From assembly GCA_047495785.1 (NCBI GenBank), contig JBLDXI010000011.1:1674001-1738000 (forward strand): a stretch of DNA of 64,000 bases. The letters are read 5' to 3'. Below are positions 1,622 through 40,700 of the stretch, in pieces; within the stretch, counting starts at the first letter, position 1; the number at the start of each line of letters is the position of its first letter. This DNA comes from Lepidodermella squamata (Eukaryota > Animalia > Gastrotricha). The position numbers and the translations under genes are program-made. The notes beneath the pieces were generated by a model. The model was not told the origin of the DNA, made no database searches, and saw nothing but the letters and a program-made list of their open reading frames with translations.

Positions 1622-3283
1622 ATGATTCTAGGAAACTTGCGCCTACTATCACTGGCGACCAAACGATTTCGTGTCGACCGTCGTCATGCTCTTCTAACGC
1701 CAAAGCTTAATACGACTCACAACTCATTCGTCATTTTCCGACGTTCCTTGTCAGCCGCGCCATCCAATAATGCCTGGCTTGACTTTGTTAAACGTATCAC
1801 AATCGGCCAACTTGCCGGTACTGCTGTCGTGCTTGTTATTGGTAGTATCCCACTTAACTACGCCTATGTTGGATATAAGAATGCGGAAGCGATGAAACGT
1901 CGTTTAGAACAAGGCTGTGGCGCATATTTAGACACGGACAACCGAGTTTTCATTGATCGTCCAGAGTTGGAGAAGGATTTACAACACTTGATAACGCCAT
2001 ATACACCGGCCTTGGCTGAAAGTTATTTCCTCATTACTGGAGAGTATGGCACAGGCAAGACGATCTCGGTTATGAAAACGTGTCGATCTGTTGGGAGAGG
2101 TGTGATTTACGTGTCTGTCCCTGCGGATGTCTCCAGATTTGCCTCAGCTTTCGCCAAAGCTACCGCCTACAAAACTGAAAGTAGAGTTTCACGCTCTCAT
2201 TTATTTGTGCTACATTTGTTCTTATATAGGTAATGAAGTAAACTTGAGCGATATTTACCGTGCGTTCAAAGAAACGGCGAAGTGGTACAAGGCGAAATAT
2301 CATAAAGTACCTGTTCTTGTCATTGACAACGTGAATATCATGGCAAAAGATGATCCAAAAATGTTAGAAGTGCTTCAAGAAGGCGCAAAAGACGCTATTG
2401 ACCATCGCCAATTCGTTACTGTATTTGTATCATCCGATAGCGTGACGCCTCAGCAAATTACGAGTTCGTTTATGCAAAGTACGATTCATTTCAGTAATTG
2501 CTAACTGTTTTTTGTATTCAATAGACAGAAATGCCTTTTCGCGTGGGAGGTTGTATCGCGTAGCCGATATGAATCAAGACCAAGTGTTCGAGTACCTTCA
2601 GAAACGTGGCGTGGAGAACACTGATGGTACGCTCTACTCGCGCGTCTTTGCCATTGTCGGTGGACGTTCGCTAGCGTTGAGCAGAGTTTCTGCTGCCCTG
2701 ATACAGGGAGAATCGTTTCAAGGTACTCACTTGTATTTGCTCTTCTATATCGCGCCTTCCGTGCCTGAACAATGTGCCTGCCGGAAATAGAAACAAATGG
2801 CGCAATAAAATTGATGCGTAGAAAGAGCTGGCGTTCAACTTTCTTACCAGCGATCAGGCACGCCACTGACTTGAGATGATGCAAAGTAAGTTTTACGTCA
2901 TTTGTTTCTATTTCTGGCACACTGTTCTGGCCCGGAAGGCGCGATATGTAAACACTAATACGTGTTTTATAGACGTGAAGAAGGCGCTATTTGCAGACGT
3001 TCGAAATCGCGTGAGACGGTGTTGGAAAAATGATGAGGATGAGACTATCATTCAAGCCATTTTTGAATGCACAAATGCGAAATCAGTTTGCACCGTGGTA
3101 GATGTTGAGCTACATCTGGAGAAGGCTGGTACTCCTATCAATGTCGAGAAGATTGATGCTATTGGAGAAAGGATGACTTCGGCAAACTTACTTTCAAAGG
3201 TTGGAGAGTCGACCTGGACTTTTCATTCAAACGTTCAGAGGTCCTACTTTAAGGAACACCCACAGGTTACGGTCATGTCATGA
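1622..3283 (+). CDS. Predicted mitochondria-targeted, TM-anchored P-loop NTPase, copy 1 (short splice type, ~433 aa)
   Basis: Exons 1622-2180, 2230-2463, 2525-2722 and 2973-3283 join in frame through three phase-1 GT-AG introns. Arg-rich presequence ending RRSLS, TM IGQLAGTAVVLVIGSIPLNYAYV, Walker A GEYGTGKT, Walker B VLVIDN, AATAAA at 3337. Intron 1 depends on a weak GTAGAG donor. Confidence 0.75.
2750..2944. mobile_element. ~195-bp MITE in intron 3
   Basis: TIRs tcgcgccttccgtgcctgaaca.tgtgcc / ggcacactgttctggcccggaaggcgcga. TSD is TA, or ATAT if the ends are CGCG. The empty site ttctatatgtaaac is in copy 3 intron 3. Confidence 0.9.
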
Positions 3284-4610
3284 TGAGCATGGCGTGATGA
3301 CCTTGTTGTTTCTCCTGACGCCAGTCCATAAAATTGAATAAACAAAAAACTTAGCGGTGATTTAACGTGTAATTATTATGTGCGTAAATATGTGGTAACG
3401 AACGAATTCGAATTATTTCGATTGTAAATTTAATAAGGGATAAAAAATAATTCTTATCATTTTGCAAAGTTCTTACGAAAATTTCTTATCTTTTGCGAAA
3501 CTGCTATGCAACTGATTGAAACGACGCAAAGAAGACTAATCAAAAGCCAACAATATAGGCTAATAATTAAGGAAACATAAGGTTAATAGTGAAAAGTCCT
3601 GTCGATGTCATTGTGCTTTTTGTGTTATATTTGTATGATATAACATGAGTAGTTTGAATAACGGTGATATGATATAACAGTGGTTCGGTGGTTGATTGTG
3701 CCCTTGTCAATACCGATCGATTCAACAAGATTGTCGACATGAGCGTGGAAGACCGCCGTGGCTCCGATCACCGAAGCATCTCGGTTAGTGTTGTGCTGAA
3801 AGATGTGAAACTGGAAAGATGGAGGTTAGATGGCAGGACGTTTGATCGAACGGTGCACGAGGCGTTTAGCAGTCAACAACTGGAAGGGTCGGCTAATTTA
3901 TTAGCGCGAGAACTGATGGCAGTGGCTGAAGATTCACGGCGCCTGACCGAGTGGTAATGGAAAGCAGCAGCAGCGAACAGGGAAGTCGTCCGCACAAACT
4001 CGCGTGTTATCAGGAGAAGGACCGAAGACGGAGACAAACTGGATTACCTGATTCGGAACCGAAACAAAGTTCCGGAATTGAAGAGGAAGGACCCTCGACC
4101 GAAATTGCCGCCGGCTGGTGCTTTCCGGAAGCACCTACAGCAGCAACTTAGTCGCGATGGAAGCGTGCCCGCTGAAAGGAAACCACCATCGACCGAGAGT
4201 GGCGCCACGAAGAGAAGAAAAGCGTTGGGCGGAGACGTCCCGGTCAAGTTGGATGGCCTGATGAGTTGGAACAGCCCGTTTGCGAGGCTGAGCCGTGATT
4301 ACGCGGAGCCGGTACGAACGCCGGATGGAATAGTGTATCACCACGAAGTGATGTTAGACCATGTGATGGAAGAGAAGCGCTGACGAACTGCCCCAGAAAG
4401 TCTACAGCTGGCTGTTACTACGATGCTCTACGAAGGAATGTTGATGAACTGGCCCCTGTTTTGTGTCGAATTTTTACCTGTATTCTGAAGGGAGAGCTTT
4501 ACTCCGAGATTTGGAAGACGGCCCTGTTATCCATGATTTTCAAGCAAGGCGACGCTAATGAGGTCAAGAACTATCGGGCGATATCGTTGAAACCGTGCGT
4601 GGCGAAGGTA

Positions 4611-5880
4611 ACGTAATATGGGGTGACTTAGCATAGCTTTTTGCGCAGTTTTATTGCGCAGTCAAAGTAACTACTAGGTGCATGAATTGTAGTGGACAGG
4701 TAAAGGTAAAGGTGGGTAAAGTCACCCCAGACACATGTTAGATGCTGATGGGGTGACTTTGCACCGCTCAAATATCGAATCCGGCAAGGTAAAGACCCTA
4801 TGAGTGAGCTACCGTTGGATAGCCTGTAAGCAAGAGGGTTCGAAAATGCCATTCGATTTCGATTTTGATCGCATGGATTCCTTTGTTTACTCACCTAAAT
4901 TCTACTGGAAATCGAATTTAAAAAAAATATCCAACCTAACTTCACCTGTTATTTCAAGCTCGGTAATATGTTGGATTGGTGTAAATTTAACACATCTAGG
5001 CCTAGCTTTCCCCGGGCTATCCAGCAGTACCCCACTCATGGGGTCTTTACCTTGCCGTTTCGATAATTTGAGTGGCTAAAGTCACCCCTTTTAGACATGT
5101 TAAAGTCACCCCACTGTGCAAAATCAGCACATTATCAGGCCAGCCTACGTTACGGCTCTGCGCGCGCTCCTATTGGCCGGCCCTTTCGCGCACGCTGTTA
5201 CGCAACACACACGCGCAGTAAGTGCGTGCGTGCGTGCTGAACTGAATCAATTTCAACCCAAAAAAGTCGCGCATTTCGCATATATTTTATCAGATTTATA
5301 ACTGCGCGTGTGTCGATTTATAAAACATAATTTCAACCGAAAAAATCTCCATCTATCGATATAAAATTTGCATGGTAGGTACGAAAAATAAGCAAACATG
5401 GCGCACTTTCGGACATATTCACAAGGCACGCTCACTCGCCCAAGTCGTGCGCACTGTTATTTATCGCTAATTTTACCGCGCGCGCAGTTGTCAAAGAGTA
5501 ACTTAAACTTTATGTGTCGGTGTTTATGTCAAAATGAAGAGAATTTAATCCTCTATCGATTGAATATATTGTTCTCGCTCGAAAAACTGAAAGGGAAAAA
5601 GTTTTACGTGCACTGAAAAATTAGGGCAGGTGACCTCACGCGAGCGCACCACCAAGTAAAAATTGGGCACGTAAAATATTTAATTCTCAGATTTTAATCG
5701 TAACAAGTCTATATTCAATCGATAGAGAATTCAATTTACTTCATTTTGATGTAAAAGCCGACGTGAAATTCATAGATTGCCCTTTGATTTCAGTTCAAAA
5801 TGAGCTGACCAATAGGAGCGCGCGCAGAGCCGTAACGTAGGCGGGCCTGAAACTGTGCGCAAAATCACCCCAAATTACGG
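4611..5880. mobile_element. Non-autonomous DNA transposon with TA TSD (Tc1/mariner/pogo-type)
   Basis: TIR ccgtaatttggggtga / tcaccccaaattacgg (perfect in the duplicate), flanked by TA. It splits the RT sequence PCVAKV|YAKIL. Internal inverted arms at about 4750-4825 and 5015-5090. Confidence 0.85.
5136..5849. mobile_element. Nested non-autonomous element with CAGG termini (hAT-like ends)
   Basis: TIRs caggcc.gcctacgttacggctctgcgcgcgctcctattgg / ccaataggagcgcgcgcagagccgtaacgtaggcgggcctg; no TSD visible. Confidence 0.75.
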
Positions 5881-7094
5881 TATATGCGAAAATCCTCAAC
5901 AATTGTCTGCGAAAGTGGTTGAGTGTATTTTCACCATCGAAACAATGTCAGTTCGGTTTTTAGGAAGGTGTCTCTTCCACTGATAGACCGCAGGTAGACC
6001 GCGAACTGTTGTTCAGGAAGCTGGTAAGGAGAGGTGTCCCGCTGCTGTTTGTGGCAATGCTGAGGGACATGTACACCGGAACGGAGGCGGCGGTCGCGGT
6101 TGGTGGCGAAGTTTCGGACACATTTGAGACAACGACCGGCGTGAAGCAGGGCGATCCTTCTGTTCTGCGTGTATATCGACGACCTTGAGGACGCGCTGTC
6201 GATTCTGGGGGTGCCTGGACTACCGCTGGGCATCAAAACTGTGCGAACTTTGCTGTTTGCCGACGATGTGGTAATTCTATGCGCGCGAAAGTGTGAAATG
6301 GACGCATACCTTCTGCGACTCGAAAAATACGATTGGCAGTATTCCGTGATTGGCAACGCGGTGTATACGTTAACCCGATATATCTCGGAAATGCAACATT
6401 CTGATCGAATCGTCTAATTGGCAGCTGCTGGGTCACCTCATGACCGAGGCATCGTTAAAGTGTTCGACAGGCTGTTGGTCTTGTTGTATCGATTTTGTAT
6501 TTAACAGTTATTCGAAATAGCAGGTGTTTTAATTAATGCTGTTACAAATAAAGAGGTCAAGTGATACCCACCAGTTACGAATTATCTGTCGTAATATTAA
6601 GGATTAATTCGCTTGTATTGATGTTGATTTTTATCTTTTTGTTTTTAATCAAAAATTTACCATCCTGGCTGCGATCGACTAATCGGGATAAATCAATTTG
6701 TATAATCGTATCGTATCGTATTTCGATTTTTTGCGCGCGTCTTTCTTTGCTCTTTCGTGAGCTTGATTGATGTTTATGTTTTTGATGAGTTACGCTTAAA
6801 CCCATTTATAATCTCTAAACGTTGTGTTAATCGTCAAAATCTTTTGCCCTTTACCCCGCCTTTTCTTCCAATCAATATCATAGTGTTCTGAGAATTCATT
6901 CTTGGACATCATAATATTAAGGCACCTGCCACAGTAGTAATTTGAAACATCTTCAATCGTAGATTGCAATTCTGTCAAAGGAAGGAGCTCGCATCCGTGA
7001 AAACATTAAAAATTACGCTGGATGCTGTGGGTATTGTGTATCTTTTGTTGGTTAACAAGTTCAAATATATTCATAGATATACAGTTAATTAAAA

Positions 7095-10000
7095 ATGATT
7101 CTAGGAAACTTGCGCCTACTATCACTGGCGACCAAACGATTTCGTGTCGACCGTCGTCATGCTCTTCTAACGCCAAAGCTTAATACAAGTCACAACTCAT
7201 TCATAATTTTCCAGCGTTCCTTCTCAGCCGTGCCATCCAAGAATGCCTGGCTTGACTTTGTTAAACGAATCACACTGGGCGAAATTGTCGGTACTGCTGT
7301 GGTGCTTGTTATTGGTAGTATCCCACTTAACTACGCCTATGTTGGATATAAGAATGCGGAAGCGTTGAAACATCGTTTAGAACAAGGCTGTGGCGCATAT
7401 TTAGAAATGGAAGGCCCAGTTTTGATAGATCGCCCAGAGTTGGAGAAGGATTTACAAGACTTGATTAGGCCATCAACACCGGACTTGGCTCGAAAATATT
7501 ACCTCATTACTGGACAGTATGGCACAGGCAAGACGACTGCGGTTATGAAAGCGTGTCGAACTGTTGGGAGTGGTGTGATTTACGTGTCTGTCCCTGAGGA
7601 TGCCTCCCTATTTGCCTCAGCTTTCGCCAAGGCTACCGCCTACAAAACTCGTGCTAGCGGATTGTTTCCATTCCTGAACCAACGTTATTTCGGACATGAA
7701 CCGACTGGTAAGTGAGAAAGTAGAGTTTCATGCTGTCATTTATATGCGCTATATTTGTTCTTATATAGGTGATGAAGTAGACTTGAGCGCTATTTACCGT
7801 GCGTTCAAAGAAACGGCGAAGTGGTACAAGGCGAAATATCATAAAGTACCTGTTCTTGTCATCGACAACGCGAATAGGCTGGCAAAAGAGAATCCAAAAA
7901 TGTTAGAAATGCTTCAAGAGGGCGCAAAAGACGCTATTGACCATCGCAAATTCGTTACTGTATTTGTATCATCCGACAGTGTGACGCCTCAGCAAATTAC
8001 GAGTTCGTTTATTTTCTGTCAATTCAAGATCAATTCAGTTCAATTTCAGTAATTGCTAACTGTTTTTTGTATTCAATAGACAGAGTTATTTTTTGGCGTG
8101 GGATGTTGTATCGCGTAGCCGATATGAATCAAGATCAAGTGTTCGAGTACCTTCAGAAACGTGGCGTGGAGAACACTGATGGTACGCTCTACTCGCGCGT
8201 CTTTGACCTTGTCGGTGGACGTTCGCTAGAGTTGAGCGGAGTTTCTGCTGACCTGTTACAGGGGAAATCGCTTCAAGGTACTCACTTGTATTTTCTCTTC
8301 TATATCGCGCCTTCCGTGCCCGAACAGCGTGAATTTACGGATCCGCGGTGGTTTCCTCCGGCCACTGAAAACTCGTGAAAGGCTAGTTTTCCATTACAAT
8401 TATTGCTCGCACACAGGGCACACAGTAGTTCAGTGGATAGCTGTCTGCTGTGTATTGAGCGTCAAGATCGATGGGCACGAGTTCGATCCCCACCCGGGTC
8501 GACCGTGGTTTATCAATGACGCTCTACCCCAACGGTGGCCGACCACTCCATCGTGTTACAAAAGTGAAAAGTGGTAGATTAGGAGTGTCAGCGAGACTGC
8601 ACTAATCGCTACCGAGCTGTCCTCAAGAGACCCCAACAAGCGACCCTAAGAGCGCTCATTCGGGACCCATGGCTTCGGCCCATCCATTCAACGAATGGGA
8701 CGTCTCAATAATAAAAAAGGAATTTTTTATTGCTCGCACGCTATTGGTCGATTAAAAAATAAACGCGGGAACCGCAATAATGCCACTGAAACAAAACAAC
8801 AGTCAACTTAACAGATTTGTGGCTCATAAAGTCAAGACCGACGCGAACATAATATTTCCCACAAACTGTAAAAAATGACTTTTTGGGAAAATTATTCCAC
8901 TAAGTAATTTTGATTAAGAATTTCTGAAATTTAGCAATAGATTTTTGGAGAAAATAAGGCTTCGATTTGCAAGCGATTCAAACCACTTTTATTCAATACG
9001 TGCAATACGCCTTGGCATTTTGCAAAATTATTTAAAAAATCCCAATGCCAATTTAATGCTTTTGAATCGATAGTCACGGTTTAAATTTTCAATTGAAATG
9101 GCGAAAAATACTATCCTATTTTTTTTAATTTCCACGGCTCAATTTTTTCGTTCATTTTTGTCGAAATAACCGTAAGATGATTGCAATGCAGACTGAGTTG
9201 GTTGCAAGCCATTCATAATTTCGTGTTGTAGTGACCTAATTAATTATTGCTTGGATATGTTTGTGTCTTGCAAAAAAAATGGGAGCAAGTTTTATTGCTA
9301 TGTGATATATTGCTACTGCAGAAAAAGACTATAGCCACAAAAGCAGGGTGCCTTCAACCTTCCTAATGCAAGTTAACCAATGTGTAAAACTAACACCGGC
9401 ATGCACACTTAGCTTATTCGCCGTGAGGCGCTATTTAATCCACTGAAAATATGCAAGTTTACCACCGAAAACACGTAAAAACATTTTTTCGCTGAGCAAC
9501 CTTGCATCGCTGGATTTTATTACGCAACTCGAGGCAAAGAGAATGAACAACATCAATCAAACCTGGCGGTTCATATCATGCAAATAACACTCAAATTTAG
9601 TGAGCGTGCTAATATCTAGTTTAATTACTGCGTCGTTGCTAATGAGAGGCGCGCGTTTTTTTCGCGTATTTGGCCGTGATGTTTCTCATCGCCTGGTTGA
9701 TACGCCTGTATTTCGCCTTCTGTTTCTTAAGTTGTTGACCAGCTTCCTGTTGCAGTAGCTCACTGTCGGTCTCGTCCTCAATGGTGATAATCAGATCGCA
9801 GAAGCGCCAAAAGACAAGGTGACTACAACGCGCGGCCCGGTTGTAGCGGCTGTTGTTGCCTTCAACGCCGTTGTTCGTACGTACGTCCTCCCCATAAACA
9901 CACCATTCTTCTGGCGGTACAGTCTCCACTGCTTACCCCAATCGTCACAGAAGTCGAGAATCTTCTTGTCGCGTCGAAAATGTAAGAGAATAAAATCATG

Positions 10001-11329
10001 TTTCCGGTGGTAAATTCGCTAATTTCCCGGTGTTAACCTGACTGCGGCGAGGCCATCCGTCGCTTTTTGGCCGACTTCGGCTTGCACTTATTGCCGCGCT
10101 TGTGTTGGCCCATACCGCGGCCATCACGAAATTCGCGACCGCACTTCGCGCATATATTCTCTCCATTTCCTGATTTACTACAAATCACGGCCAGAAGAGA
10201 GCAGTGCAGTACAGTTAAATGTTCAGTACAGTACAGCTCTCTTTGAGTGATTTTTACACATTGGTAAACTTGCATTGGGAAACTTGCATTGGGGAAGTTA
10301 AATGAATCGAAAGCAGCACGAATAAACATAAACTGAAATACTGTAATGACTTGTGACAACCTCAACCTTAAATAACGAAAAGACTTCATCTCGATTTTCT
10401 CAAACATTTATTAATATTCCGAATTCAAAGTCCACCTGTAATTTGCAGTGTTCAGGATTTCAGGATGGTGGAAAAAACCAGCCTTTTACTTCATTTTTGA
10501 GTTCAGCGAAATGGAAAATTTTTGTTGAATTTTTTGGGCGATGAATTTTGGCGATTTTTGTCAATTATTTCTAATTTTCAGCGAGGAGTCGAAGGCGTGA
10601 AATTCACAGCCTTTGCTCATTTTTTCTAATTATTGATTCCACCGGACGTATGCTTTATTTGGAAATTGTTTCAATCATTTTCTCGAAGAAACTGTTCACA
10701 GCCTCTGAAAATGAGGCATTTTTCTTTGCACCGATCTGCATTATTAGCCATGAATCTGTGAAGTCGACTGTTATTTTTTTTCGCAGCGACTCCCGCGTTC
10801 ATTTTTGAATTGCCCAATAGCGTGCGAGCAATTAATTGTAATGGAAAATTAGCCTTTCACGGCTTTTTAGTGGCCGGAGGAAACCACCGCGGATCCGTTA
10901 ATGTGCACTTGGTGAAGATGCAAAGTTAGTTTTAAGCCATTTGTTTCTATTTCTGGCACACTGTTCTGGCCTGGAAGGCGCGATATGCAAACACTAATAC
11001 GTGTTTAATGTTTAATAGACGTGAAGAAGGCGCTATTTGCAGACGTTCGAAATCGCGTGAGACGGTGTTGGAAAAATGATGAGGATAAGACTATCATTCA
11101 AGCCATTTTTGAATGCACAAATGCGAAATCAGTTTGCACCGTGGTAGATGTTGAGCTACATCTGGAGAAGGCTGGTACTCCTATCAATGTCGAGAAGATT
11201 GATGCTATTGGAGAAAGGATGACTTCGGCAAACTTACTTTCAAAGGTTGGAGAGTCGACCTGGACTTTTCATTCAAACGTTCAGAGGTCCTACTTTAAGG
11301 AACACCCACAGGTTACGGTCATGTCATGA
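7095..11329 (+). CDS. P-loop NTPase copy 2 (long splice type, ~451 aa)
   Basis: Exons 7095-7707, 7769-8002, 8080-8277 and 11019-11329 in frame. Canonical GTAAGT donor in intron 1; GQYGTGKT and VLVIDN; intron 3 is 2741 nt and filled with TEs. Confidence 0.8.
8331..10908 (-). mobile_element. Internally deleted Mutator-like (MULE) element inside the intron-3 MITE
   Basis: ~85-bp TIRs (acggatccgcggtggtttcctccggccact...). Minus-strand remnants: zinc-finger-like CAKC...H...C and the C-terminal WCVYGEDVRTNNGVEG. The catalytic D..D region is absent, and this copy has a further ~750-bp deletion relative to 34544-39896. Confidence 0.85.
8413..8726 (+). mobile_element. tRNA-derived SINE
   Basis: A box TAGTTCAGTGG (8426), B box GAGTTCGATCC (8479), 3' hairpin and A-rich tail. 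13-bp TSD ttattgctcgcac at 8400-8412 and 8727-8739. Empty site at about 34612 in the duplicate. Confidence 0.9.
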
Positions 11330-11722
11330 TGAGCATGGCGTGATGACCTTGTTGTTTCTGCTGAAAGCCCATAAACCTTAATAAACAACCATACTTAGCG
11401 ATGATTTAACGTGTAATTATTATGTTCGTAAATATGTGGTAACGAACTTGAATTATTTCGATTGTAAATTTAATAAGGGATTAAAAATAATTCTTATCAT
11501 TTTGGAAAGTTCTTACGAAAATTTCTTGTCTTTTGCGAAACTGCTATGCAACTGATTGAAACGACGCAAAGAAGACTAATCAAAAGCCAACAATATAGGC
11601 TAATAATTAAGGAAACATAAGGTTAATAGTGAAAAGTCCTGTCGATGTCTTGTGCGTTTTGTGTTATATTTGTATGATATGAATGACATGAGTAGTATGA
11701 ATAACGGTGATATGATATAACA

Positions 11723-12535: not shown

Positions 12536-12679
12536 TGTAGAACAAGTAGAACAATGAAAACCAGAAGAACAATGTAGACAGGGCAGAGAAAGAGTTGGGT
12601 AATCTCGGATTAACGGGTCTCACTCGTGCGGCCATTTGCGTTCGAGGTGCCAAAAGTATCGTGCGAAGCAAATATACGA

Positions 12680-12962: not shown

Positions 12963-13535
12963 AATTTCTAAAATATAGCTGGGCGGCGCGGCAACAGTGC
13001 TTGGGCGACCTTGGCTCAAGACCATGGTCGATCAATCCAGTGTCGAGCAGTGTGTCGTATGCCGTAAGTTATACCTATGGCAAAACTAGGAGATTGCCGG
13101 CCCGTCGCATCCTGGTCGACCAGACCGCGATGTGGTCGCTTTCGGACTTGGGTCGTAACAGTATCGTGTTTCAATTTTTGGCGCGCGTCTTTCTTTGCTC
13201 TTTCGTGCGCTTGATTGATGTTTTTGTTTTTGATGAGTTACGCTTAAACCCATTTATAATCTCTAAACGTTGTGTAAATCGTCAAAATCTTTTGCCCTTT
13301 ACCCCGCCTTTTCTTCTAATCAATATCATAGTGTTCTGAGAATTCATTCTTGGACATCATAATGTTAAAGCACCTGCCACAGTAGTCATTTGATTCAATC
13401 GTAGAGTGCAATTCTGCCAAAGGAAGGAGCTCGCATCCCTGAAAACATTAAAAATCACGCTGGATGTTGTGGTATTGAGTATCTTTTGTTGGTTAATAAG
13501 TTCAAATATATTCATAGATATACAGTTAATTAAAA

Positions 13536-21835: not shown

Positions 21836-21836
21836 A

Positions 21837-26894: not shown

Positions 26895-27089
26895 TCGCGC
26901 CTTCCGTGCCTGAACAGTGTGCCTGCCGGAAATAGAAACAAATGGCGCAATGAAATTGATGCGTAGAAAGAGCTGGCGTTCAACTTTCTTACCAGCGATC
27001 AGGCACGCCACTGACTTGAGATGATGCAAAGTTAGTTTTACGTCATTTGTTTCTATTTCTGGCACACTGTTCTGGCCCGGAAGGCGCGA
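26895..27089. mobile_element. ~195-bp MITE in intron 3 of copy 4
   Basis: Same TIRs and insertion site as 2750-2944. Confidence 0.9.
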
Positions 27090-27831
27090 TATGTAAACAC
27101 TAATACGTGTTTTATAGACGTGAAGAAGGCGCTATTTGCAGACGTTCGAAATCGCGTGAGTCGGTGTTGGAAAAATGATGAGGATGAGACTATCATTCAA
27201 GCCATTTTTGAATGCACAAATGCGAAATCAGTTTGCACCGTGGTAGATGTTGAGCTACATCTGGAGAAGGCTGGTACTCCTATCAATGTCGAGAAGATTG
27301 ATGCTATTGGAGAAAGGATGACTTCGGCAAACTTGCTTTCAAAGGTTGCAGAGAAGACCTGGACTTTTCATTCAAACGTTCAGAGGTCCTACTTTGAGGA
27401 ACACCCACAGGTTACGGTCATGTCATGATGAGCATGGCGTGATGACCTTGTTGTTTCTCCTGACGACAGTCCCTAAAATTGAATAAACAAAATACTTAGC
27501 GATGATTTAACGTGTAATTATTATGTGCGTAAATATGTGGTAACGAACTTGAATTATTTCGATTGTAAATTTAATAAGGGATAAAAAATAATTCTTATCA
27601 TTTTGCAAAGTTCTTACGAAAATTTCTTATATTTTGCGAAACTGTTATGCAACTGATTGAAACGACGCGAGGAAGACTAATCAAAATCCCACAATATAGG
27701 CTAATAATTAAGGAAACATAAGGTTAATAGTGAAAAAGCCTTTCGACGTCATTGTGCTTTTTTGTGTTTTATTTTTGTATGATATAACATGAGTAGTTTG
27801 AATAACGGTGAAATGATATAACAGTTGTTCG

Positions 27832-30421: not shown

Positions 30422-32536
30422 TTATACACTTTTCTATCGTGCACATTGGGCATTATTATATAGTGTGCACGACGGCCGTGCACGATGAAAATGTCAGTCT
30501 CACTTTTGTCAGGCTTTAAAAATCATTTCGGTCGATTTTAAAAATAACCGGGCTGAATAAAACGGTTAAATTTTATATCAGCATTATCGGGCTAAGGAGG
30601 TCTATGTAATGGATCAGATCATTTATTTAAAATTTGTCGCGTTTAAAATTTAGCTGTGCACGACGGATCTTGCACGACCTAGTAAGGACCAGTAATTAAA
30701 TCGCCGATAATTACCGCGCCCGTACTCAAACAGATATAATATAGGGAATAGTGCGCGCACCTTGATAGGTTATTAGCGCGCGCGGGACGCTGTACTCAAA
30801 CATGAAACCGTATTTATTACCTTAAAAATCGGTAAAATAGAAATAATATTTCTTGTTTTAGGATTTTCATTTTAATTTTTATTGGACGCGCCTCCTTCGT
30901 CGGCGCGAGCGCGCTATTTTTATTTCTACCAACTGACCCATCCTTCTCATTTCTACATTTTTGATCTATAGCCATCAAGGCCGAGAAGCGTCCAATTGGG
31001 TCTGGTTTGTTGCTACTAAAATCGGGAAAATCAGACAAAATATTATTACCTTATTTCGTGTAATTTTTGTGTAATTTTTTGTGGACGCGCCTCCTTCGTC
31101 GGCGCGAGTAATATTTTTAAATCATTATTGGGAGCGCTCGGCGCATTGTTTTTGCGTATTTGCGGTTTCATTTTAACTCTTTAATTCAATCTGGGACACG
31201 CTCCCTGCGGTCGCGTGTTCGTTTTAAATTGGGTCATTTATTTTCTCTCGTGGCTACCTCATTTTTTAATCTGGTTTATTTATTGTCTTCGGGGCCATTG
31301 CTTGATGATTATAATTGAGATAATAGGTAAAATCAGGAATAGTTTTTTTTCTGGACGCGCCCCCCTGCGGTCGGCGCGCATCCCTGTTTTTTCGGGTCAT
31401 TTATTGTCTCTTTGGCCGCAAAGAAGCGCTTGCGCAATAATAATGACCTGGGTCATTTAATTGTGTCAGGTCAATTATCGGAGCGCGCGTGCCATCTTCT
31501 GGGTTTCGGTTTTTTACCGGGTTGGGAATGTGACCCAGGTCATGAAATTATTACAGGAGCGCGCCTCCCTTTGGTCGGCGCGCATATGCCTTTATACAGG
31601 GCTTGAGATTTTATTACAGGTAATGGAATGTGACCTGGGTCACGTTTTTTGGCAGGGCCGGGCGGACGCGGCAGGGGTCTCATTAATTTTACGCGGCAGC
31701 CCTATGGAATCCTAGTGGGCTGCCGCTGCGGCTGTCGTGATCAACAAAATGGGGTGTTTTCCTCTATTTTCGGAAAAACTTGAAATTTTCAAAAAATCGT
31801 AGAAAATCAACGGTTTATGACAGGGCAATTTGGAAATCAGATTCCAAGAGACAATTTGCGACTGAATATGGAAAAAATTAGCAAGACGTAAGCACACCTC
31901 CACAGCGAATAAGCGACAGGTCTATTGATGTCTTATCAAATGAAAAATGGGTGTTATTTTCAATAATTGTAATTTTCATATATATTTAAATAAATTTAAC
32001 CAGAATCAAATGGACGCTTCTCGGCCTTGATGACTATAGATCAAAAGTGTAGAAAGAGAAGGATGGGTCAGAAAGGCATCCTAGTTATCTATTTTTTTTC
32101 GTAATTTGGAATTTGCATATTTTACGGCTATTTATAATGGCCTTGTTCCTTCGGTCAATCTCTATAAATTTGAAATGAAATGATGAAAAATAGGTGAAAA
32201 CATTTCTCTGGCGCCTTGACCTATATTTCGGAATACGCGCGCACTCAGGTAATTAGCGTGGCCGACTATATTATTGCTGTTAATTATGGGCTGAATTTTA
32301 TATAATTTTTATCTCGCTGATTTTTCACTCGATTTTCATCGGGTAAAATTTGTTAGTCTTCGCTTGGCGAATATTATGTGGCTGCAAATTTTCAATTTTT
32401 TTAAATTAAAATTGGGAGAATTATAGCGTTTTGAAATTTTAAAGTACTGGCATGTGTGAATGACCTAGTGCGTGTGCACGATGGCCTGGTAATAGTTGTG
32501 CACACTAATATTAGGCACAGTGCATGAAAAAAAGTG
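30422..32536. mobile_element. ~2.1-kb non-coding insertion with CACTTTT...AAAAGTG termini
   Basis: Absent at the paralogous site (aaaaatacgattggcag at about 6323-6339). Imperfect TIRs, gtgcacga repeats near both ends, internal inverted segment at 30935-31000 / 32008-32070. Confidence 0.75.
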
Positions 32537-33301
32537 CGATTGGCAGTATTCCGTGATTGGCAACGCGGTGTATACGTTAACCCGATATATGTCGGAAATG
32601 CAACATTCTGATCGAATCGTCTAATTGGCAGCTGCTGTGTCACCTCATGACCGAGGCATCGTTAAAGTGTTCGACAGGCTGTTGGTCTTGTTGTATCCTT
32701 TTTGTATTTAACAGTTATTCGAAATAGCAGGTGTTTTAATTAATGCTGTTACAAATTAAGAGGTCAAGTGATACCCACCAGTTACGAATTATCTGTCGTA
32801 ATATTAAGGATTAATTCGCTTGTATTGATGTTGATTTTTATCTTTTTGTTTTTAATCAAAAATTTACCATCCTGGCTGCGATCGACTAATCGGAATAAAT
32901 CAATTTGTATAATCGTATCGTATCGTATTTCAATTTTTTGCGCGCGTCTTTCTTTGCTCTTTCGTGAGCTTGATTGATGTTTATGTTTTTGATGAGTTAC
33001 GCTTAAACCCATTTATAATCTCTAAACGTTGTGTTAATCGTCAAAATCTTTTGCCCTTTACCCCGCCTTTTCTTCTAATCAATATCATAGTGGTCTGAGA
33101 ATTCATTCTTGGACATCAAATTATTAAGGCACCTGCCACAGTAGTCATTTCAAACATCTTCAATCGTAGCTAGCGATTCTGTCGAAAGAAGGAGCTCGAA
33201 TCCCCGAAAACATTAAAAATTACGCTGGATGCTGTGGGTATTGAGTATTTTTTGTTGGTTAATAAGTTCAGATATATTCATAGATATACAGTTAATTAAA
33301 A

Positions 33302-36300
33302 ATGATTCTAGGAAACTTGCGCCTGCTGGCGCGATCTTTGGCGACCAAAGGATTTCGTGTCGACTGTCGTCATGTTCTTCTAACGCCAAAGCTTAATACG
33401 AGTCACTACTCAGCCGCCATTTTCCGGCGTTCCTTCTCAGCCGCGCCATCTGAAAATGCCTGGCTTGACTTTGTTAAACGAATCACACTGGGCGAAATTG
33501 TCGGTACTGCTGTGGTGCTTGTTATTGGTAGTATCCCACTTAACTACGCCTATGTTGGATATAAGAATGCGGAAGCGTTGAAACATCGTTTAGAACAAGG
33601 CTGTGGCGCATATTTAGAAATGGAAGGCCCAGTTTTGATAGATCGCCCAGAGTTGGAGAAGGATTTACAAGACTTGATTAGGCCATCAACACCGGACTTG
33701 GCTCGAAAATATTACCTCATTACTGGACAGTATGGCACAGGCAAGACGACTGCGGTTATGAAAGCCTGTCGAACTGTTGGGAGTGGTGTGATTTACGTGT
33801 CTGTCCCTGAGGATGCCTCCCTATTTGCCTCAGCTTTCGCCAAGGCTACCGCCTACAAAACTCGTGCTAGCGGATTGTTTCCATTCCTGAACCAACGTTA
33901 TTTCGGACATGAACCGACTGGTAAGTGAGAAAGTAGAGTTTCATGCTGTCATTTATATGCGCTATATTTGTTCTTATATAGGTGATGAAGTAGACTTGAG
34001 CGCTATTTACCGTGCGTTCAAAGAAACGGCGAAGTGGTACAAGGCGAAATATCATAAAGTACCTGTTCTTGTCATCGACAACGCGAATAGGCTGGCAAAA
34101 GAGAATCCAAAAATGTTAGAAATGCTTCAAGAGGGCGCAAAAGACGCTATTGACCATCGCAAATTCGTTACTGTATTTGTATCATCCGACAGTGTGACGC
34201 CTCAGCAAATTACGAGTTCGTTTATTTTCTGTCAATTCAAGATCAATTCAGTTCAATTTCAGTAATTGCTAACTGTTTTATTTATTCAATAGGCAGAGTT
34301 ATATTTTGGCGTGGGAGCTTGTATAGCGTAGCCGATATGACTCAAGATCAAGTGTTCGAGTACCTTCAGAAACGTGGCGTGGAGAACACTGATGGTACGC
34401 TCTACTCGCGCGTCTTTGCCCTTGTCGGTGGACGCTCGCTAGAGTTGAGCAGAGTTTCTGCTGACCTGATACAGGGAGAATCGCTTCAAGGTACTCACTT
34501 GTATTTTCTCTTCTATATCGCGCCTTCCGTGCCTGAACAGCGTGAGCACATTTACGGATCCGCGGTGGTTTCCTCCGGCCACTAAAAACTAAGGCTAGTT
34601 TTCCATTACAATTATTGCTCGCAAGCTATTGGTCGATTAAAAAATAAACGAGTGTGCTATTTGCACCCACACGCGGGTGCATCCGATTTGCTAGATACAC
34701 CCTAAGGGTGCAACAATTTTGCTCGCTACACCCTATACCGCGCGTTAGTGTGGGTGCGACGATTTGACTCGTTACACCCTATACAAACAATAAGGAATTA
34801 GGAAAAAGCCGTCTGTCGGTGCGGCAAGGTGTACAGAAGTAATTAAACAAGGTAAAATGCGAGCTAGCGAGATTAGGTATTCCTACAATTCCTATTTTCT
34901 ATTCCTGTAGGCTTTGACATGCCAAAATAGGGTGACTTTGGCATGCCAAAAATCGAATATGGTAAGGTAAAGACCTAGTGAGTGGGGTACCGTTGGATAG
35001 CCCAAGGAAAGGCCAGCCTGGATGTGCACAATGCGCATCATAACAACCTATTTTGGGAGAGGACATAATATGTAAAGTCGCGGAATTTTTTCAATTTCTA
35101 CCGTATTTTTCGAATAAGGGAAGCACTCCAAATAAAGGCCGCACCCGATTTAACCCTGCGTTTTTAGGCCTTTTTCAAAAAATCAGGAAAATAGTCGCCG
35201 CGGCCCTTATTCGAAAAAATACGGTATATTAATATTAATTGAAACTTCGGTGACGGCTAAACCGAAACCGACTAATTGAATATGAATATGAAAGTACTCC
35301 TTTCGCGAGGTCTTTACCTTACCATATTCGATTTTTGGCATGCCAAAGTCACCCTATTTTGGCATGTCAAAGCCTACAGGAATAGAATACCGTAGAGCGG
35401 TACAATTTTGAACAAGTACAAAGTTGAACATTTTTTCAAAAGTACAATTTTGAACGAACGTTTGCATTGAAAATTTCGTTAATGTTCAAAATTGTACTTC
35501 ACACTCACGAAAGTACAATTTTGAACACTTTCATTTTTTTCAATGCAAACGTTCGTTCAAAATTGTACTTTTGAAAAAATGTTCAAAGTTGTACCCTGTT
35601 CAAAATTGTACCGCTCTACGGTATAGGAATTGTAGGAATAGGATAAAGAGTATAGGAATTGAGGGAATAGGGAATAGGAATTAGGAATTACTATTCCTCC
35701 AAGTGTCAAAGTGACCCCACTGCCCCACTGCCCCACTGCCTACAGTTGGAAACAAGCAGACGCTCCTGAGTAGGGCACCCGGAAGTGGAGCAGCCGGCTT
35801 TGAAGTCGTCGACGATTGGCGTTTACGATTTCTTTGTTTTTTTTTCCGCTCCGACTCTGGCGCTGCGGGTGCAATCATAGCCGTCATGGTGCATTCTGCG
35901 GGTCACGAAGGAAACACTGATCTCCAGGTGAAAATCAAACAATGGGTGCACGAGTTCAAGGCAGGAAGCCGGGCGGTAATAGGTTATAGAAGACCGGCTC
36001 GAGAATATTGATTAGTGGTGTTAATGAACGCGAGCGAAAGGTAGCGGCGGTGGTATAGCGCCCAACTCGCGACCGTCTTAATCCTATTGATGTTGCTTTC
36101 GGTTTGCACACGGCCTGCGCTTTCAGCCCTATCTTCAAGGCCTGTAACTGATGACATTGATCAGCGGCACCGGACAGATTATTAACTCCTTGGCGCGCAA
36201 TGAATGGCTCTCTAGCCGCCGCGCGCGGTCAAGTGGGTGTAGCGGTTTTTCTCTCTGCACCCGTGATTTCATTACCGTCCAATCAAATGTATTGGGTGTA

Positions 36301-39300
36301 CGTGCACGCGGGTGCGCGCAGCTATTTTCGCGCACCTTCCGGGTGTAGCTAGCTATAATCCTGCACCCTCGGGTGTAGCAAGCAAATTCTATGCACTCAG
36401 CGGGCGGGTGCAGCTAGCGACGACCAAAAATAAACGCGGGAACCGCAATAATGCCACTGAAACAAAACAACCGTCGACTGAAACAAAACAACAGATTTGT
36501 GGCTCATAGTCAAGACCGACGCGAACATTACAATTCCCACAAACTGTAAAAATTGACTTTTTGGGAAAATTATTCCACTAAGTAATTTTGATTAGGAATT
36601 TCTAAAATTTAGCAATAAATTCCTAATACCAATTTAATGCTTTTGAATTGATAGTCACGGTTTAAATTTTCCATAAATTTTCAATTGAAATGGCGAAAAA
36701 TACTATCCATTTTTTTAATTTCCACGGCGCAATTTTTTCGTTCATTTTTGTCGAAATAACCGTAAGATGATCGCAATTCAGACTGAGCTGGTTGCAAGCC
36801 ATTCATAATTTCGTGTTGTAGTGACCTAATTAATTATTGCTTGGATATGTTTGTGTCTTGCAAAAAAAATGGGAGCAAGTTTTATTGCTATGTGATATAT
36901 TGCTACTGCAGAAAAAAACTATAGCCACGAAAGCAGGGTGTCTTCAACCTTCCTAATGCAAGTTTCCCAATGCAAGTTTACCAATCTGTAAAACTAACAC
37001 CGGCATGCACACTTTTAGCTAATTCGCCGCGAGGCGCTATTTAATCCACTGAAAATATGCAAGTTTACCACCGAAAACACGTAAAAACATTTATTCGCTG
37101 AGCAACCTTGCATCGCAGGATTTTATTACTCAACTCGAGGCAAAGAGAATGAACAACATCAATCAAACCTTGCGGTTCATATCATGCAAATAGCACTCAA
37201 ATTTAGTGAGCGTTCTAATAGCTAGTTTAACCCTTAGACGCCGGCGCAATGACGTGTGGGGGTACGACTTGAGGCGTCCGAGTTTTTATGTATTAAAAAA
37301 CGCGGCGACCCGCTAAAATTGACTTATAAACGCGTTTTTCAATTTTTTTCACGGTTTCTCACGTTAGGTCAAAGTTTATTGTTATAAAACGCGCTGAAGC
37401 GTCAGATCGACGGGTTTACAAGTAAGAACACGTGTCACCACAAGGCTTTTTATTAACGCATTATTATTAGCTTGTTTTTTCGAGAAATTTATTCGACGAT
37501 GTGCGAGGCGTGCATCACTGTGAATCATGATAATACGTCGTGTATTCACGCAACAGTCGTAACGCCAATTCGCGTCATTGCAAAAAACGTGTTGCCTCCC
37601 AATCGAGCTCGACTTGACACGATTTTGGACGCGTTTACAAGTTCTGAAAAAAAATTGTCACTATGTCCCCCACTGGGCCAACAGGTAATTATTTTCCGAA
37701 TCAAAGCTTCGACCTATGGTTACCTGGGTATTTGAGACTAATTACCGTGCAAAAATGAAACCGTTTGGACTAAAAATGAATTTTCGGCAAATTTTTATTC
37801 GAATTGACTCGTGTACACGTCATCGGCGGCTAAGGGTTAATTACTGCGTCGTTGCTAATGAGAGGCGCGTTTTTTCGCGTATTTGGCCGTGATGTTTCTC
37901 ATCGCCTCGTTGATACACCTGTATTTCGCCTTCTGCTTCTTAATTTGTTGACCAGCTTCCTGTTGCAGTAGCTCACTGTCGGTCTCGTCCTCAATGGTGA
38001 TAATCAGATCGTAGAAGCGCCAAAAGACAAGGTGACTACAACGCGCGGCCCGGTTGTAGCGGCTGTTGTTGCCTTCAGCGCCGTTGTTCGTACGTACGTC
38101 CTCCCCATAAACACACCATTCTTCTGGCGGTACAGTCTTCAACCACTGCTCACCCCAATAGTCACAGAAGTCAAGAATCTTCTTGTCGCGTCGAAAAAGT
38201 AGAACGACTGCCTACAACTTTCGAAGGCTGGAAATTTCAGCAAAGCGCCCGGGTATCGATCTTTGAGGTTGCCGCGAACCTCTTGATAAGCTTCGGGTCC
38301 AGTATTTTTCGTTGTTCTAGCCAGCTCGCGGAACTTTGCGAGTGAAACTTCAATCTCGGCAGCAATTTCGTCAACTCCGTGATGATCGTGGTGTTGAAGT
38401 AATTCAACAGCCCCATCTTGTTCAATGCAGGATCCCAGGCAGCCAGTCTCACGGCGTTTAGCACAGTAATAACGATTTTGATAATAGTCGCTGAAGAGGT
38501 CGAGGTGATAAACCTGATAGTCGTCAGTTATTATTGTCTGGGTCTTTTTCGTATTCAGATACTGGTACTTGACAACAGCAGTTTCAACAACTGACGGAAC
38601 CGTTGAGGCTGGCGAAGAACCAGTTGCTTCAGAATCAGGAGAGCTGCTAGTGGATTCATCGCTCATGAAGACCTGCGTAGCGGCTAGTTGACGGTTTTTT
38701 TCTTCCAGCTGTCGCCGTAGCTCACGGTTTTCGGCTGCCAAGCGTGCCTTTGTGCTAGAAGGTATTTTCGGTGGGCTGAACAGGGCCACAGGCGTAATTA
38801 TGGTTTTCGCAGCGGTGGGCTTCTTCTTGCGCTTAGCTGTGATTTGCGGCTTAGCTGTTGACACCACAGGCGGTTGGAAACTGGGAGCGAAGCAAGCGAC
38901 GATGACGAATAGGAAGTGGCCGGCGATGATGAAGATGAAGCACCTGGATAATAAAATCATGTTTCCGGTGGTAAATTCGCTAATTTCCCGGTGTTTACCT
39001 GACTGCGGCGAGGCCATCCGTCGCTTTTTGGCCGACTTCGGCTTGCACTTATTGCCGCGCTTGTGGCCCATACCGCGGCCATCACGAAATTCGCGACCGC
39101 ACTTCGCGCATATATTTACTCCATTTCCTGATTTACTACAAATCACGGCCAGAAGAGAGCAGTACAGTACAGTTAAATGTTCAGTACAGTACAGCTCTCT
39201 TTGAGTGAGTTTTACACATTGGTAAACTTGCATTGGGAAACTTGCATTGCGGAAGTTAAAGGAATCGAAAGCAGCACGAATGAACGTAAACTGAAATACT

Positions 39301-40314
39301 GTAATGACTTGTGACAACCTCAACCTTGAATAACGAAAAGATTTCATCTCGATTTTCTCAAACATTTATTAATATTCCGAATTCAAAGTCCACCTGTAAT
39401 TTGCAGTGTTCAGGATTGCAGATGGTGGAAAAAACCAGCCGTTTACTTCATTTTTGAGTTCAGCGGAATTGAAAGTTTTTGTTGAATTTTTTGGGCGATG
39501 AATTTTGGCGATTTTTGTCAATCATTTCTAATTTTCAGGGAGGAGCCGGAGGCGTCTAAAATGTTGAAATTAGGGTGAAATTCACAGCCTTTGCTCAGTT
39601 TTGTTTAATTATTGATTCCACCGGACGTATGCTTTATTTGGAAATTGTTTCAATCATTCTCTCGAAAAAACTGTTCACAGCCTCTGAAAATGAGGCATTT
39701 TTCTTTGCACCGATCTGCATTATTAGCCATGAATCTGTGAAGTCGACGGTTATTTTGTTTCGCAGCGGCATTAATGCGACTCCCGCGTTCATTTGAATTG
39801 CCCAATAGCGTGCGAGCAATTAATTTTAATGGAAAATTAGCCTTTCACGGCTTTTTAGTGGCCGGAGGAAACCACCGCGGATCCGTAAATGTGCACTTGG
39901 TGAAGATGCAAAGTTAGTTTTAAGCCATTTGTTTCTATTTCTGGCACACTGTTCTGGCCCGGTTAGTCTTTGCAAACACTAATACGTGTTTAATGTTTAA
40001 TAGACGTGAAGAAGGCGCTATTTGCAGACGTTCGAAATCGCGTGAGACGGTGTTGGAAAAATGACGAGGATAAGACTATCATTCAAGCCTTCTTCGAATG
40101 CACAAATGCTAAGCCAGTTTGCACCGTGGTGGATGTAAAGCAACATCTGAAGAAGGCTGGTACTCCTTTCGATTACGAGAAGATTAATGCTATTGGAAAA
40201 AGGATGACTTCAGCAAACGTACTTTCAAACCTTGGAGGGAAGACCTGGACTTTTCGTTCAAACGTTGAGAGGTCATACTTTCAGGAACACCCACAAGTTA
40301 CGGTCATGTCATGA
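33302..40314 (+). CDS. P-loop NTPase copy 5 (long splice type, ~453 aa)
   Basis: Exons 33302-33920, 33982-34215, 34293-34490 and 40004-40314 in frame; GQYGTGKT and VLVIDN; intron 3 is 5513 nt. Confidence 0.8.
35101..35224. mobile_element. 124-bp MITE, TA TSD
   Basis: TA|ccgtattttt(t)cgaataaggg ... cccttattcgaaaaaatacgg|TA. Confidence 0.9.
35390..35621. mobile_element. 232-bp palindromic MITE, TA TSD
   Basis: TA|ccgtagagcggtacaattttgaaca ... tgttcaaaattgtaccgctctacgg|TA; internal gtacaattttgaac repeats. Confidence 0.9.
37231..37836. mobile_element. piggyBac-type non-autonomous element
   Basis: TTAA|cccttag.cgccg ... cggcggctaaggg|TTAA; empty TTAA site at about 9621 in the duplicate. Confidence 0.9.
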
Positions 40315-40472
40315 TGAGCATGGCGTGATGACCTTGTTGTTTCTCCTGAAAGCCCATAAACCTTAATAAACAACCATACTTAGCGATGATTTAACGTGTA
40401 ATTATTATGTGCGTAAATATGTGGTAACGAACTTGAATTATTTCGATTGTAATGCCATGCTTTACAATCGAT

Positions 40473-40700
40473 GAGGTCCTACTTTAAGGAACACCCACAG
40501 GTTACGGTCATGTCATGATGAGCATGGCGTGATGATCTTGTTGTTTCGCCAGTCCATAATATTTAATAAACAAAATGCTTAGCGATGATTCAGCGTGCTT
40601 TTTATTGTCAATTTATATGAGCGTAAATGTGTGGTAACGAACTCAAATTATTTGGATTGTGAATTAAATAAGAGATAAAAAATAATTCTTATAATTTCTT
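40473..40700 (+). pseudogene. Orphan 3' end (last codons plus 3' UTR) of another NTPase copy
   Basis: Encodes RSYFKEHPQVTVMS-stop with a UTR resembling copy 3; begins right after a short inverted-repeat junction at 40443-40471. Confidence 0.85.

Follow-up and report, generated by a model that had tools for sequence, protein, structure and literature searches.

A tandem array of genes for a predicted membrane-anchored AAA+ ATPase, plausibly mitochondrial, in the gastrotrich Lepidodermella squamata

Gene content and structure of the array

The window analysed here is a stretch of 64,000 nucleotides of the Lepidodermella squamata genome (assembly GCA_047495785.1, contig JBLDXI010000011.1, positions 1,674,001 to 1,738,000 of the forward strand), numbered from its first letter. 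Five copies of a four-exon gene, here named A to E, were found on the same (+) strand between positions 1622 and 40314, together with the relic of a sixth copy (Table 1). The encoded protein is predicted to be an ATPase of the AAA+ class anchored by a single transmembrane (TM) helix, for which a mitochondrial location is plausible. An earlier note on this DNA, made from the letters alone, had described five four-exon copies, four of them open and one dead, plus relics; this layout was borne out by self-comparison of the window, by tblastn and by the spliced gene models.

The models of copies A, B, C and E were spliced by hand, with GT..AG introns that all lie in phase 1. All 12 splice-site pairs and the four reading frames are intact despite 3-15% divergence, and in each of these copies the fourth exon codes for a C-terminal domain of 103 aa. 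The mean GC content of the window is 43% and its introns generally measure 49-77 nt; intron 3 of copy B is swollen to 2.7 kb by repeat insertions, and that of copy E reaches 5.5 kb, with transposon sequence inside. The earlier note had given a protein of 451 aa. The open frames stand, but the length is replaced by those listed in Table 1, because the exon-2 donor is placed differently, at ACGA/GTTCGT (the slash marks the exon boundary). This donor is common to all copies and was confirmed by the intron positions of two distant homologues. The donor tried first, CAAA/GTACGA, was dropped, being missing in B and E and adding five residues that are unknown in any homologue.

The copies come in two forms. 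The long forms (B and E) retain 18 codons at the end of exon 1 (RASGLFPFLNQRYFGHEPTG), whose residues align to those of the closest relative (P0001, see below), as well as the ancestral GTAAGT donor. In the short forms (A, C and D) the end of exon 1 has lost the same 54 nt, and with them both the 18 codons and the GTAAGT donor; a cryptic GTAGAG donor preserves the frame and phase 1. Each copy is preceded by a conserved region of about 200 nt, presumably the promoter and 5' untranslated region, and followed by an AATAAA signal 51-56 nt past the stop codon (54 nt in A).

Table 1. Positions of the gene copies, their upstream regions and the larger insertions of the array within the window.
Feature	Position	Strand	Exons or parts	Evidence
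Conserved upstream region, about 200 nt, one per copy	1419-1621 (A), 6895-7094 (B), 13343-13535 (C), 23683-23882 (D), 33102-33301 (E)	+		Five-way alignment; repeat families D5-D7
Copy A, short form, 434 aa, open	1622-3283	+	1622-2180, 2230-2463, 2525-2722, 2973-3283	Spliced model, family motifs intact
Copy B, long form, 452 aa, open	7095-11329	+	7095-7707, 7769-8002, 8080-8277, 11019-11329	Spliced model
Copy C, short form, 434 aa, open	13536-15002	+	13536-14094, 14144-14377, 14439-14636, 14692-15002	Spliced model
Non-LTR (long terminal repeat) retrotransposon block with apurinic/apyrimidinic endonuclease (APE) and reverse transcriptase open reading frames, between A-C and D-E	15400-23000			Pfam Exo_endo_phos_2, RVT_1
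Copy D, pseudogene, duplicate of A	23883-27428	+	Exon 1 split 24315/26448; rest of exon 2 ~26631-26727; end of exon 3 26735-26866; exon 4 ~27118-27428	tblastn, self-comparison, junction sequences
Foldback transposon, 2.1 kb, ~800-nt inverted arms	24316-26447			Inverted match 24324-25141 / 26439-25633 at 84.6%; junctions
Copy E, long form, 454 aa, open, duplicate of B	33302-40314	+	33302-33920, 33982-34215, 34293-34490, 40004-40314	Spliced model
Sixth-copy relic: last 46 nt of exon 4 and 3' flank	40473-40697	+		tblastn 14/14 residues; blastn 88% to the 3' end of copy C

Family members and age of the gene

Exon 1 of copy B served as query in an exhaustive HMMER search, which retrieved 175 proteins at E<=1e-3 from 1.8 billion representatives and on which the following picture of the family rests. 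The best match, P0001, is a protein of 406 aa that is 53% identical over its full length and is encoded without introns on a transcript-like environmental contig with 43% GC. Word-index searches with P0001 and with an alignment yielded just 2 and 4 proteins, the list of candidates being saturated by P-loop words. Named members were found in the bdelloid rotifer Didymodactylos carnosus and in Diversispora epigaea, Entrophospora sp., Funneliformis geosporum and Endogone sp., where they are annotated only as 'hypothetical' or 'ATPase domain-containing'. At least four diverged paralogues are present in D. epigaea and several recent ones in Entrophospora sp. The family thus spans a rotifer, Mucoromycota and many environmental sequences from eukaryotes that are unplaced. 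A quick tree made the four window proteins monophyletic (support 100), with P0001 as sister (99), followed by the rotifer sequence together with P0098 (98); all the Mucoromycota sequences that carry names fall in the sister clade, along with unnamed environmental ones.

All three introns of the window genes are present at homologous positions, in phase 1, in P0151 of D. epigaea and P0008 of D. carnosus. Intron 1 falls at TG/DEV in the window, TS/NNS in Diversispora and DE/GKQ in the rotifer; intron 2 at QQIT/NR, RRME/SR and EQME/GR; and intron 3 at SLQ/DVKK, SFE/DIKK and PAE/TIER, respectively. The shared introns confirm the splice model and mark the gene as an old cellular gene rather than a transposon passenger. 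Judged by these sequences, the gene appears to predate the animal-fungal split, or at least to have moved between lineages together with its introns.

The same evidence bears on the idea that the copies were spread by transposition, the gene being part of a mobile element or carried along by one. The copies do lie amid the remains of non-LTR, foldback, Mutator-like element (MULE)-like and P-like transposons. Against this stand the three introns conserved with rotifer and fungal homologues, and the setting of the homologues in the rotifer, Diversispora, Entrophospora and an environmental eukaryote, which are single cellular genes among ordinary neighbours. The duplication units lack terminal repeats and target-site duplications, and the same orientation and adjacency of the copies fit unequal crossing-over plus segmental duplication. 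A transposition origin is therefore considered extremely improbable.

No relevant literature was found on the family, on PF01637 in mitochondria or on nSTAND5. The family is small, old and patchily distributed in eukaryotes, and carries no functional name in any source, so that the earlier note was right to call it undescribed. It occurs in animals (a rotifer), early-diverging fungi and protists, and is absent from the usual model organisms.

Predicted fold and relation to other ATPases

P0001 served as a proxy for the spliced window proteins in the Pfam, Protein Data Bank (PDB) and structure work, while the window proteins themselves were scanned exon by exon. The exon-wise Pfam scan gave weak P-loop matches only, the one for exon 2 being 13.8 bits for ATPase_2. 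P0001 matched ATPase_2 (PF01637) with 34.5 bits, against a gathering score of 33.2, and among 36 members (E<=0.1) AAA_16 and AAA_22 were matched by all 36 and ATPase_2 by 33, with a best ATPase_2 E value of 2.5e-14. The AlphaFold2 model of P0001, built from a 36-sequence alignment, reached a predicted local distance difference test score (pLDDT) of 89 and a predicted template modelling score (pTM) of 0.86. In it, a long helix made up of TM segment and linker leads into a five-stranded AAA+ core, which is followed by a helical lid and, at the C-terminus, by a winged helix.

Foldseek comparison of the model with the PDB ranked the archaeal ATPase_2 proteins 2fna (E 2e-10) and 2qen (E 1.2e-9) on top, each with about 360-370 aligned columns, followed by Cdc6/Orc1 and then by CED-4, the resistosomes of plant nucleotide-binding leucine-rich repeat receptors (NLRs) and MalT. 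A profile search of the PDB sequences again placed 2fna first. The best NCBIfam match was the Orc1/Cdc6 model TIGR02928 (E 4e-7), with 29.3 bits for P0001 and 26.5 for P0008 against a cut-off of 181.3. An Rfam scan gave no match.

On the model, then, the protein is predicted to be a membrane-anchored AAA+ ATPase of the ATPase_2 / Cdc6-Orc1 type, made of core, GGR lid and winged helix, in keeping with the membrane-anchored P-loop NTPase with winged helix proposed earlier. The archaeal ATPase_2 proteins SSO1545 (2fna) and PABY2304 (2qen) have the same order of core, lid and winged helix over about 360 columns and are the best structural and profile matches; they differ from this eukaryotic family in that the latter has ancient spliceosomal introns, a targeting-like extension, a TM anchor and a GGR rather than GG-I-P lid, and identity is just 12-16%. 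Cdc6/Orc1 proteins belong to the same AAA+ clade by fold and likewise carry a C-terminal winged helix, an Arg-finger-like residue and a sensor-2 Arg. Unlike them, the window proteins are membrane-anchored, lack a catalytic Glu and score far under the TIGR02928 cut-off, and nothing about them suggests DNA binding.

The earlier note had assigned a layout of the type found in signal transduction ATPases with numerous domains (STAND), and had expected AAA_16, ATPase_2 or NB-ARC-like matches plus a winged helix. The three-part layout holds: like Apaf-1/CED-4, NLRs, MalT and nSTAND5, the family has a nucleotide-binding domain, a helical domain and a winged helix, and a helix with a conserved Arg before Walker A. 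AAA_16 and ATPase_2 were also matched by family members, and the winged helix is present in the model of P0001. The STAND assignment itself is only partly borne out, as STAND proteins rank after ATPase_2 and Cdc6/Orc1, the lid has GGR and not GxP, and MHD-type motifs are absent. Neither sensor repeats nor effector domains were found by Pfam in the window exons or in the 36 members, and the protein ends after the winged helix. STAND models of Pfam remained below their cut-offs (nSTAND5, 30.5 vs 34; NACHT, 18 vs 26.7), and a PADLOC scan gave nothing specific, with weak sub-threshold matches only.

Bcs1, ATAD3 and Msp1/ATAD1 combine an N-terminal anchor with a single ATPase module; they are AAA proteins of the classical clade, with Walker B DE, and are oriented towards the matrix or the cytosol. 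The family showed no specific similarity to them, the matches to PF00004 being weak and restricted to the P-loop.

Conserved motifs of the ATPase module

The motifs listed in the earlier note (an Arg-rich, acid-poor N-terminus, R-S-(L/F)-S, a TM segment, a DR motif, Walker A and B, VGGR and a C-terminal domain of about 100 aa) are all present. Within the ATPase module, (F/L)IDRP, GxYGTGKT, VLVIDN, F(S/W)RG and VGGR occur in each of A, B, C and E.

Conserved columns were read from the 36-member family alignment, in P0001 numbering. R59 lies in the helix that precedes the P-loop and corresponds to the (F/I)DR motif noted before. Walker A has the family form GxxGxGK[ST]T. The residue after the Walker B strand, hhhhD188, is Asn in 21 of the 36 members and acidic in just 2; every window copy with a Walker B (A, B, C and E) carries the Asn, without a catalytic Glu directly after the Asp. 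Further on are the sensor-1 strand VFVSS-[ED]225-G, an SRC-like Arg-finger position (S-x-x-S-R240) and a sensor-2-like position in the lid (GG-R281). These catalytic-site columns (R59, Walker A, D188 with the Asn, E/D225, R240 and GG-R281) are intact in A, B, C and E, so that the AAA+ hallmarks of Walker A, an hhhhD Walker B, an Arg-finger-like residue and a sensor-2 Arg are found in both the family and the four intact copies. A juxtamembrane Cys (GxCP) was considered as a further family feature and dropped, as only a subset of the members carries it.

Duplication, gene conversion and loss of copies

The array contains a segmental duplication, in which the block 791-11467 with A and B is about 96% identical to the block 23068-40452 with D and E; the second block carries extra transposon insertions. 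Tracts of gene conversion were also detected: A and C share 344 identical nucleotides comprising exon 2 with introns 1 and 2, and in B and E exon 2 and the flanking introns are likewise identical. In contrast, exon 4 diverges by 9.6% between B and E and by 14.6% between A and C, versus 1.4-8.8% in the adjacent non-coding DNA. The array is thus a mosaic produced by gene conversion, partly homogenised and partly decaying.

One element occurs in intron 3 of both B and E, at 9639-10407 (-) and 37855-39365 (-), with 92-97% identity and open reading frames (ORFs) of 96-408 aa that have no Pfam match. Its presence in this intron of both copies implies that it was there before the segmental duplication.

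Copy D was inactivated by two independent events. The foldback transposon of Table 1 was inserted in the Walker A codons, where its junctions are cleanly resolved and flanked by an 8-bp target-site duplication (TGGCACAG); duplications of this length are made by elements of the hAT and P superfamilies. The second event is a deletion of 264 bp, with 7 nt of filler, which extends from the Walker B Asp to the middle of exon 3 and, by removing 203 coding nucleotides, shifts the frame. With one copy dead and another reduced to a relic, the locus represents lineage-expanded tandem paralogues in an array that gains and loses copies, as the earlier note had stated. It offers a clear record of how a tandem family behaves, including conversion tracts, a segmental duplication, a dated knock-out by a transposon and the rescue of a splice site after a deletion.

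Selection on the copies

The ratio of nonsynonymous to synonymous divergence (dN/dS) was estimated by the Nei-Gojobori method for pairs of copies, over the whole gene and by region. Whole-gene values range from 0.53 to 1.06, with 0.53 for B-E (p=0.03) and 0.62 for C-E (p=0.006). In exon 4, dS is 0.16-0.60 and dN/dS 0.34-0.57, and two pairs, A-C (p=0.009) and C-E (p=1e-4), lie significantly below 1. The high divergence of exon 4 therefore goes together with a high dS, which points to age and escape from conversion rather than adaptive change. In the 5' half, where very few synonymous changes separate the long from the short forms, dN/dS between them is about 1.1-1.6 and does not depart from 1 (p=0.86). 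No comparison of copies and no gene region gave a dN/dS significantly above 1. Indels within exons are all in-frame, while many indels are found in the flanking non-coding DNA. The copies are under genuine, if weak, purifying selection; positive selection is not demonstrated.

Could the array be dead or dying, that is, junk in a transposon-rich region whose frames remain open through youth and repair by conversion? Several features would be expected of a decaying locus: a dead copy and a relic, the 18-codon deletion with a makeshift donor in three copies, a dN/dS near 1 in the 5' half between the two forms, and transposons inserted in introns and spacers. Four open frames and 12 intact splice-site pairs at 3-15% divergence are difficult to reconcile with it, and so are the restriction of exonic indels to in-frame ones, the significant purifying selection on exon 4 and on the whole gene, and the retention of all the conserved catalytic residues. 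We consider it improbable that the array as a whole is dying.

A second alternative concerns the cause of the turnover. The earlier note had taken the birth and death of copies as a sign of conflict, and the protein could accordingly be imagined as an organelle-based, STAND-like sensor of immunity or cell death, or as another conflict locus, in which copies turn over by an arms race. Its fold is common to the nucleotide-binding modules of CED-4, NLRs and MalT, weak sub-threshold matches to nSTAND5, NACHT and Avs1b were obtained, the gene is multi-copy in the arbuscular mycorrhizal fungi Diversispora and Entrophospora too, and a dN/dS of 0.53-1.06 is high for a housekeeping gene. Most of the evidence given above is nevertheless at odds with this interpretation: the protein has neither sensor repeat nor effector domain and a GGR in place of a GxP, ATPase_2 and Cdc6/Orc1 outrank the STAND proteins, exon 4 is under purifying selection with a divergence that tracks its age and its escape from conversion, and the homologues elsewhere are single genes among ordinary neighbours. 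No meaningful match to a PADLOC family was obtained. In addition, unrelated genes next to the array duplicate and decay in the same way (see below); the neighbours being tandem, decaying orphan families among transposons, the dynamics look regional and not specific to this gene. The step from an unstable array to conflict or immunity is thus not supported, a conflict role is judged unlikely by a wide measure, and on present evidence the locus does not reveal a new immune or selfish system.

N-terminal extension and transmembrane helix

Over the first 50 residues of copies A, B, C and E the net charge is +7 to +8, a single residue is acidic and 8-9 are Ser/Thr; R-S-(L/F)-S lies at about residues 42-45. 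A single hydrophobic segment spans residues 59-80 or so, leaving about 58 residues ahead of it, and in most full-length members of the family the TM helix is found 73-80 residues upstream of Walker A. The bias is family-wide: extensions ahead of the TM helix contain 14% basic and 5.5% acidic residues, versus 12.9% and 12.5% in the remainder of the proteins, and the R-3 type motif R-x-[FYL]-[SA] occurs in 13 of 52 extensions, compared with 6.8 +/- 2.4 in shuffled ones. Many of these extensions look like textbook presequences, which agrees with the presequence-like N-terminus that had been recognised in the window copies. From these features, mitochondrial targeting of the protein is plausible.

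When a cleavable presequence is followed by a TM helix with a charged C-terminal flank and a short, non-acidic mature N-tail, the usual outcome is an N-in/C-out stop-transfer arrangement. If this sorting rule is applied to the window proteins, the ATPase would face the intermembrane space (IMS).

Comparison with Yme2 and proposed mode of action

The closest known architecture is that of yeast Yme2, a protein of the mitochondrial inner membrane with a presequence, a matrix RNA recognition motif (RRM), one TM helix and an IMS-facing AAA+ domain (PMC9284673). The closest HHpred relatives of this domain are in the Orc/Cdc6 initiator clade; its Walker B reads hhhhDR, with a sensor-1 Glu 36 residues past the Walker B Asp, and its Walker motifs are required for function and for a homo-oligomer of about 1.2 MDa (PMC9284673).

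The window proteins resemble Yme2 in the presequence-type start, the single TM helix, the C-terminal AAA+ module and the Glu-less Walker B, a match in architecture only. The acidic residue of sensor 1 is 37 residues past the Walker B Asp, versus 36 in Yme2, with an Arg soon after. The Pfam model of Yme2, RNA12 (PF10443), matches several members in the region of lid and winged helix below its threshold, and in P0109 it is the sole Pfam match; the exon-wise scan of the window gave no RNA12 match. Unlike Yme2, the window protein has no matrix RRM between presequence and TM helix and is about half the size. Among 12 longer relatives, 3 were inspected, with P0023 and P0053 scanned with Pfam, and these contain no RRM, only low-complexity spacers. 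The family also scores higher on ATPase_2 and AAA_16 than on RNA12. With the RNA12 threshold failed, the RRM lacking and ATPase_2 and AAA_16 matching better, the family cannot be filed as a member of the Yme2 family; by analogy, it probably works like the ATPase half of Yme2.

The explanation that we put forward, with a little better than an even chance of being correct, is that of an ancient, TM-anchored AAA+ family, probably mitochondrial and facing the IMS, which resembles the AAA+ half of Yme2. We infer the targeting, topology, oligomerisation and biological role of the protein as follows. The basic, acid-poor extension, about 45 residues long and with an R-3 type motif at its end, would act as a mitochondrial presequence, and the TM helix would stop transfer in the inner membrane and leave the ATPase on the IMS side, as in Yme2, with a linker of about 50 residues joining helix and AAA+ module. 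The absence of a catalytic Glu speaks for slow hydrolysis and a switch-like protein, and the conserved Arg finger and sensor 2 argue for composite sites between subunits, that is, for oligomers. The protein thus probably acts not as a fast motor but as a slow switch or scaffold that depends on nucleotide and oligomerises, and its winged helix would offer a surface for binding partners.

Several observations count against this explanation. The RNA12 scores fall short of the gathering threshold of 27 bits, with 26.8 for P0054 (E 2.8e-6), 17.7 for P0109 and 11.8 for P0001. The enrichment of the R-3 motif is modest, as 11 of 1000 shuffles attain it. The TM helix is moderately hydrophobic (Kyte-Doolittle value 1.75-1.88) and contains a proline, and its flanking charges leave the orientation undecided. 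In P0001 an in-frame stop lies 15 nt ahead of the ATG and the protein begins 8 residues before the TM helix, and several further members also begin at the TM helix. A presequence is therefore not universal in the family, and localisation may vary within it, P0001 being a member without one. At the locus itself, 18 conserved residues are missing from the short forms, whose donor is weak, and the dN/dS of about 1 in the 5' half between the forms may reflect relaxed constraint on some copies.

Part of these observations would suit a different topology, with the anchor in the mitochondrial outer membrane or the endoplasmic reticulum, the ATPase in the cytosol as in Msp1/ATAD1, and an extension that is not a cleaved presequence. 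Members that begin at the TM helix, such as P0001 with its upstream stop, are what this topology would predict, and moderate TM hydrophobicity is typical of signal-anchored proteins. Signal anchors, however, lie at the extreme N-terminus, whereas 45-110 strongly basic, acid-poor residues precede the TM helix in the window copies and in most full-length members. We regard a cytosolic orientation as rather unlikely, with more to recommend it than a dying array or a conflict locus.

A bolder version of the IMS-facing model can be drawn, in which the family is an undescribed ancient class of IMS-facing AAA+ switches, sister of the Yme2 ATPase half without the RNA-binding domain, its expansions reflecting surveillance or conflict at the mitochondrial surface and its long and short forms assembling together. 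This version is speculative and is given little credence. To our knowledge, very few ATPases act in the mitochondrial IMS. As the family consists of an anchor and an ATPase only, it may provide a simpler system in which to ask what such a module does.

Neighbouring genes and transposons

The remainder of the window is occupied by transposons and tandem orphan genes. The non-LTR block includes an APE-type endonuclease ORF at 16200-18164 (+), located in an island of 58.5% GC (16-18 kb) against a background of 43%, which suggests that this element is compositionally foreign or recently arrived. Downstream of the array, a piece of a TNP/THAP9-like RNase H domain was found at 40928-41374 (+) (Pfam PF21789, 24.6 bits), and three adjoining transposase ORFs at 48358-49675 (-), which end in a SWIM-like CxC motif, have a MULE-like look.

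A single-exon ORF of 656 aa at 53593-55563 (+) encodes an N-terminal domain followed by seven hydrophobic peaks, resembling a G protein-coupled receptor in appearance; it has no Pfam match and no homologue among 5.8 billion proteins. Three paralogous fragments of it with broken frames were found at 45605-46010, 50737-52357 and 58509-58724. Further along the window is a tandem pair of multi-TM genes for proteins of about 500 aa, 59090-60589 (-) and 61632-63170 (-), with Pro/Gln-rich N-termini that contain PPxY-like motifs and 74.5% DNA identity between them; they had no Pfam match, and an exact-sequence look-up gave no record.

Both halves of the array have upstream of them a 90%-identical repeat (1-436 and 21426-21833) with an ORF of about 100 aa (255-554 and 21652-22002), which is probably derived from a transposon.

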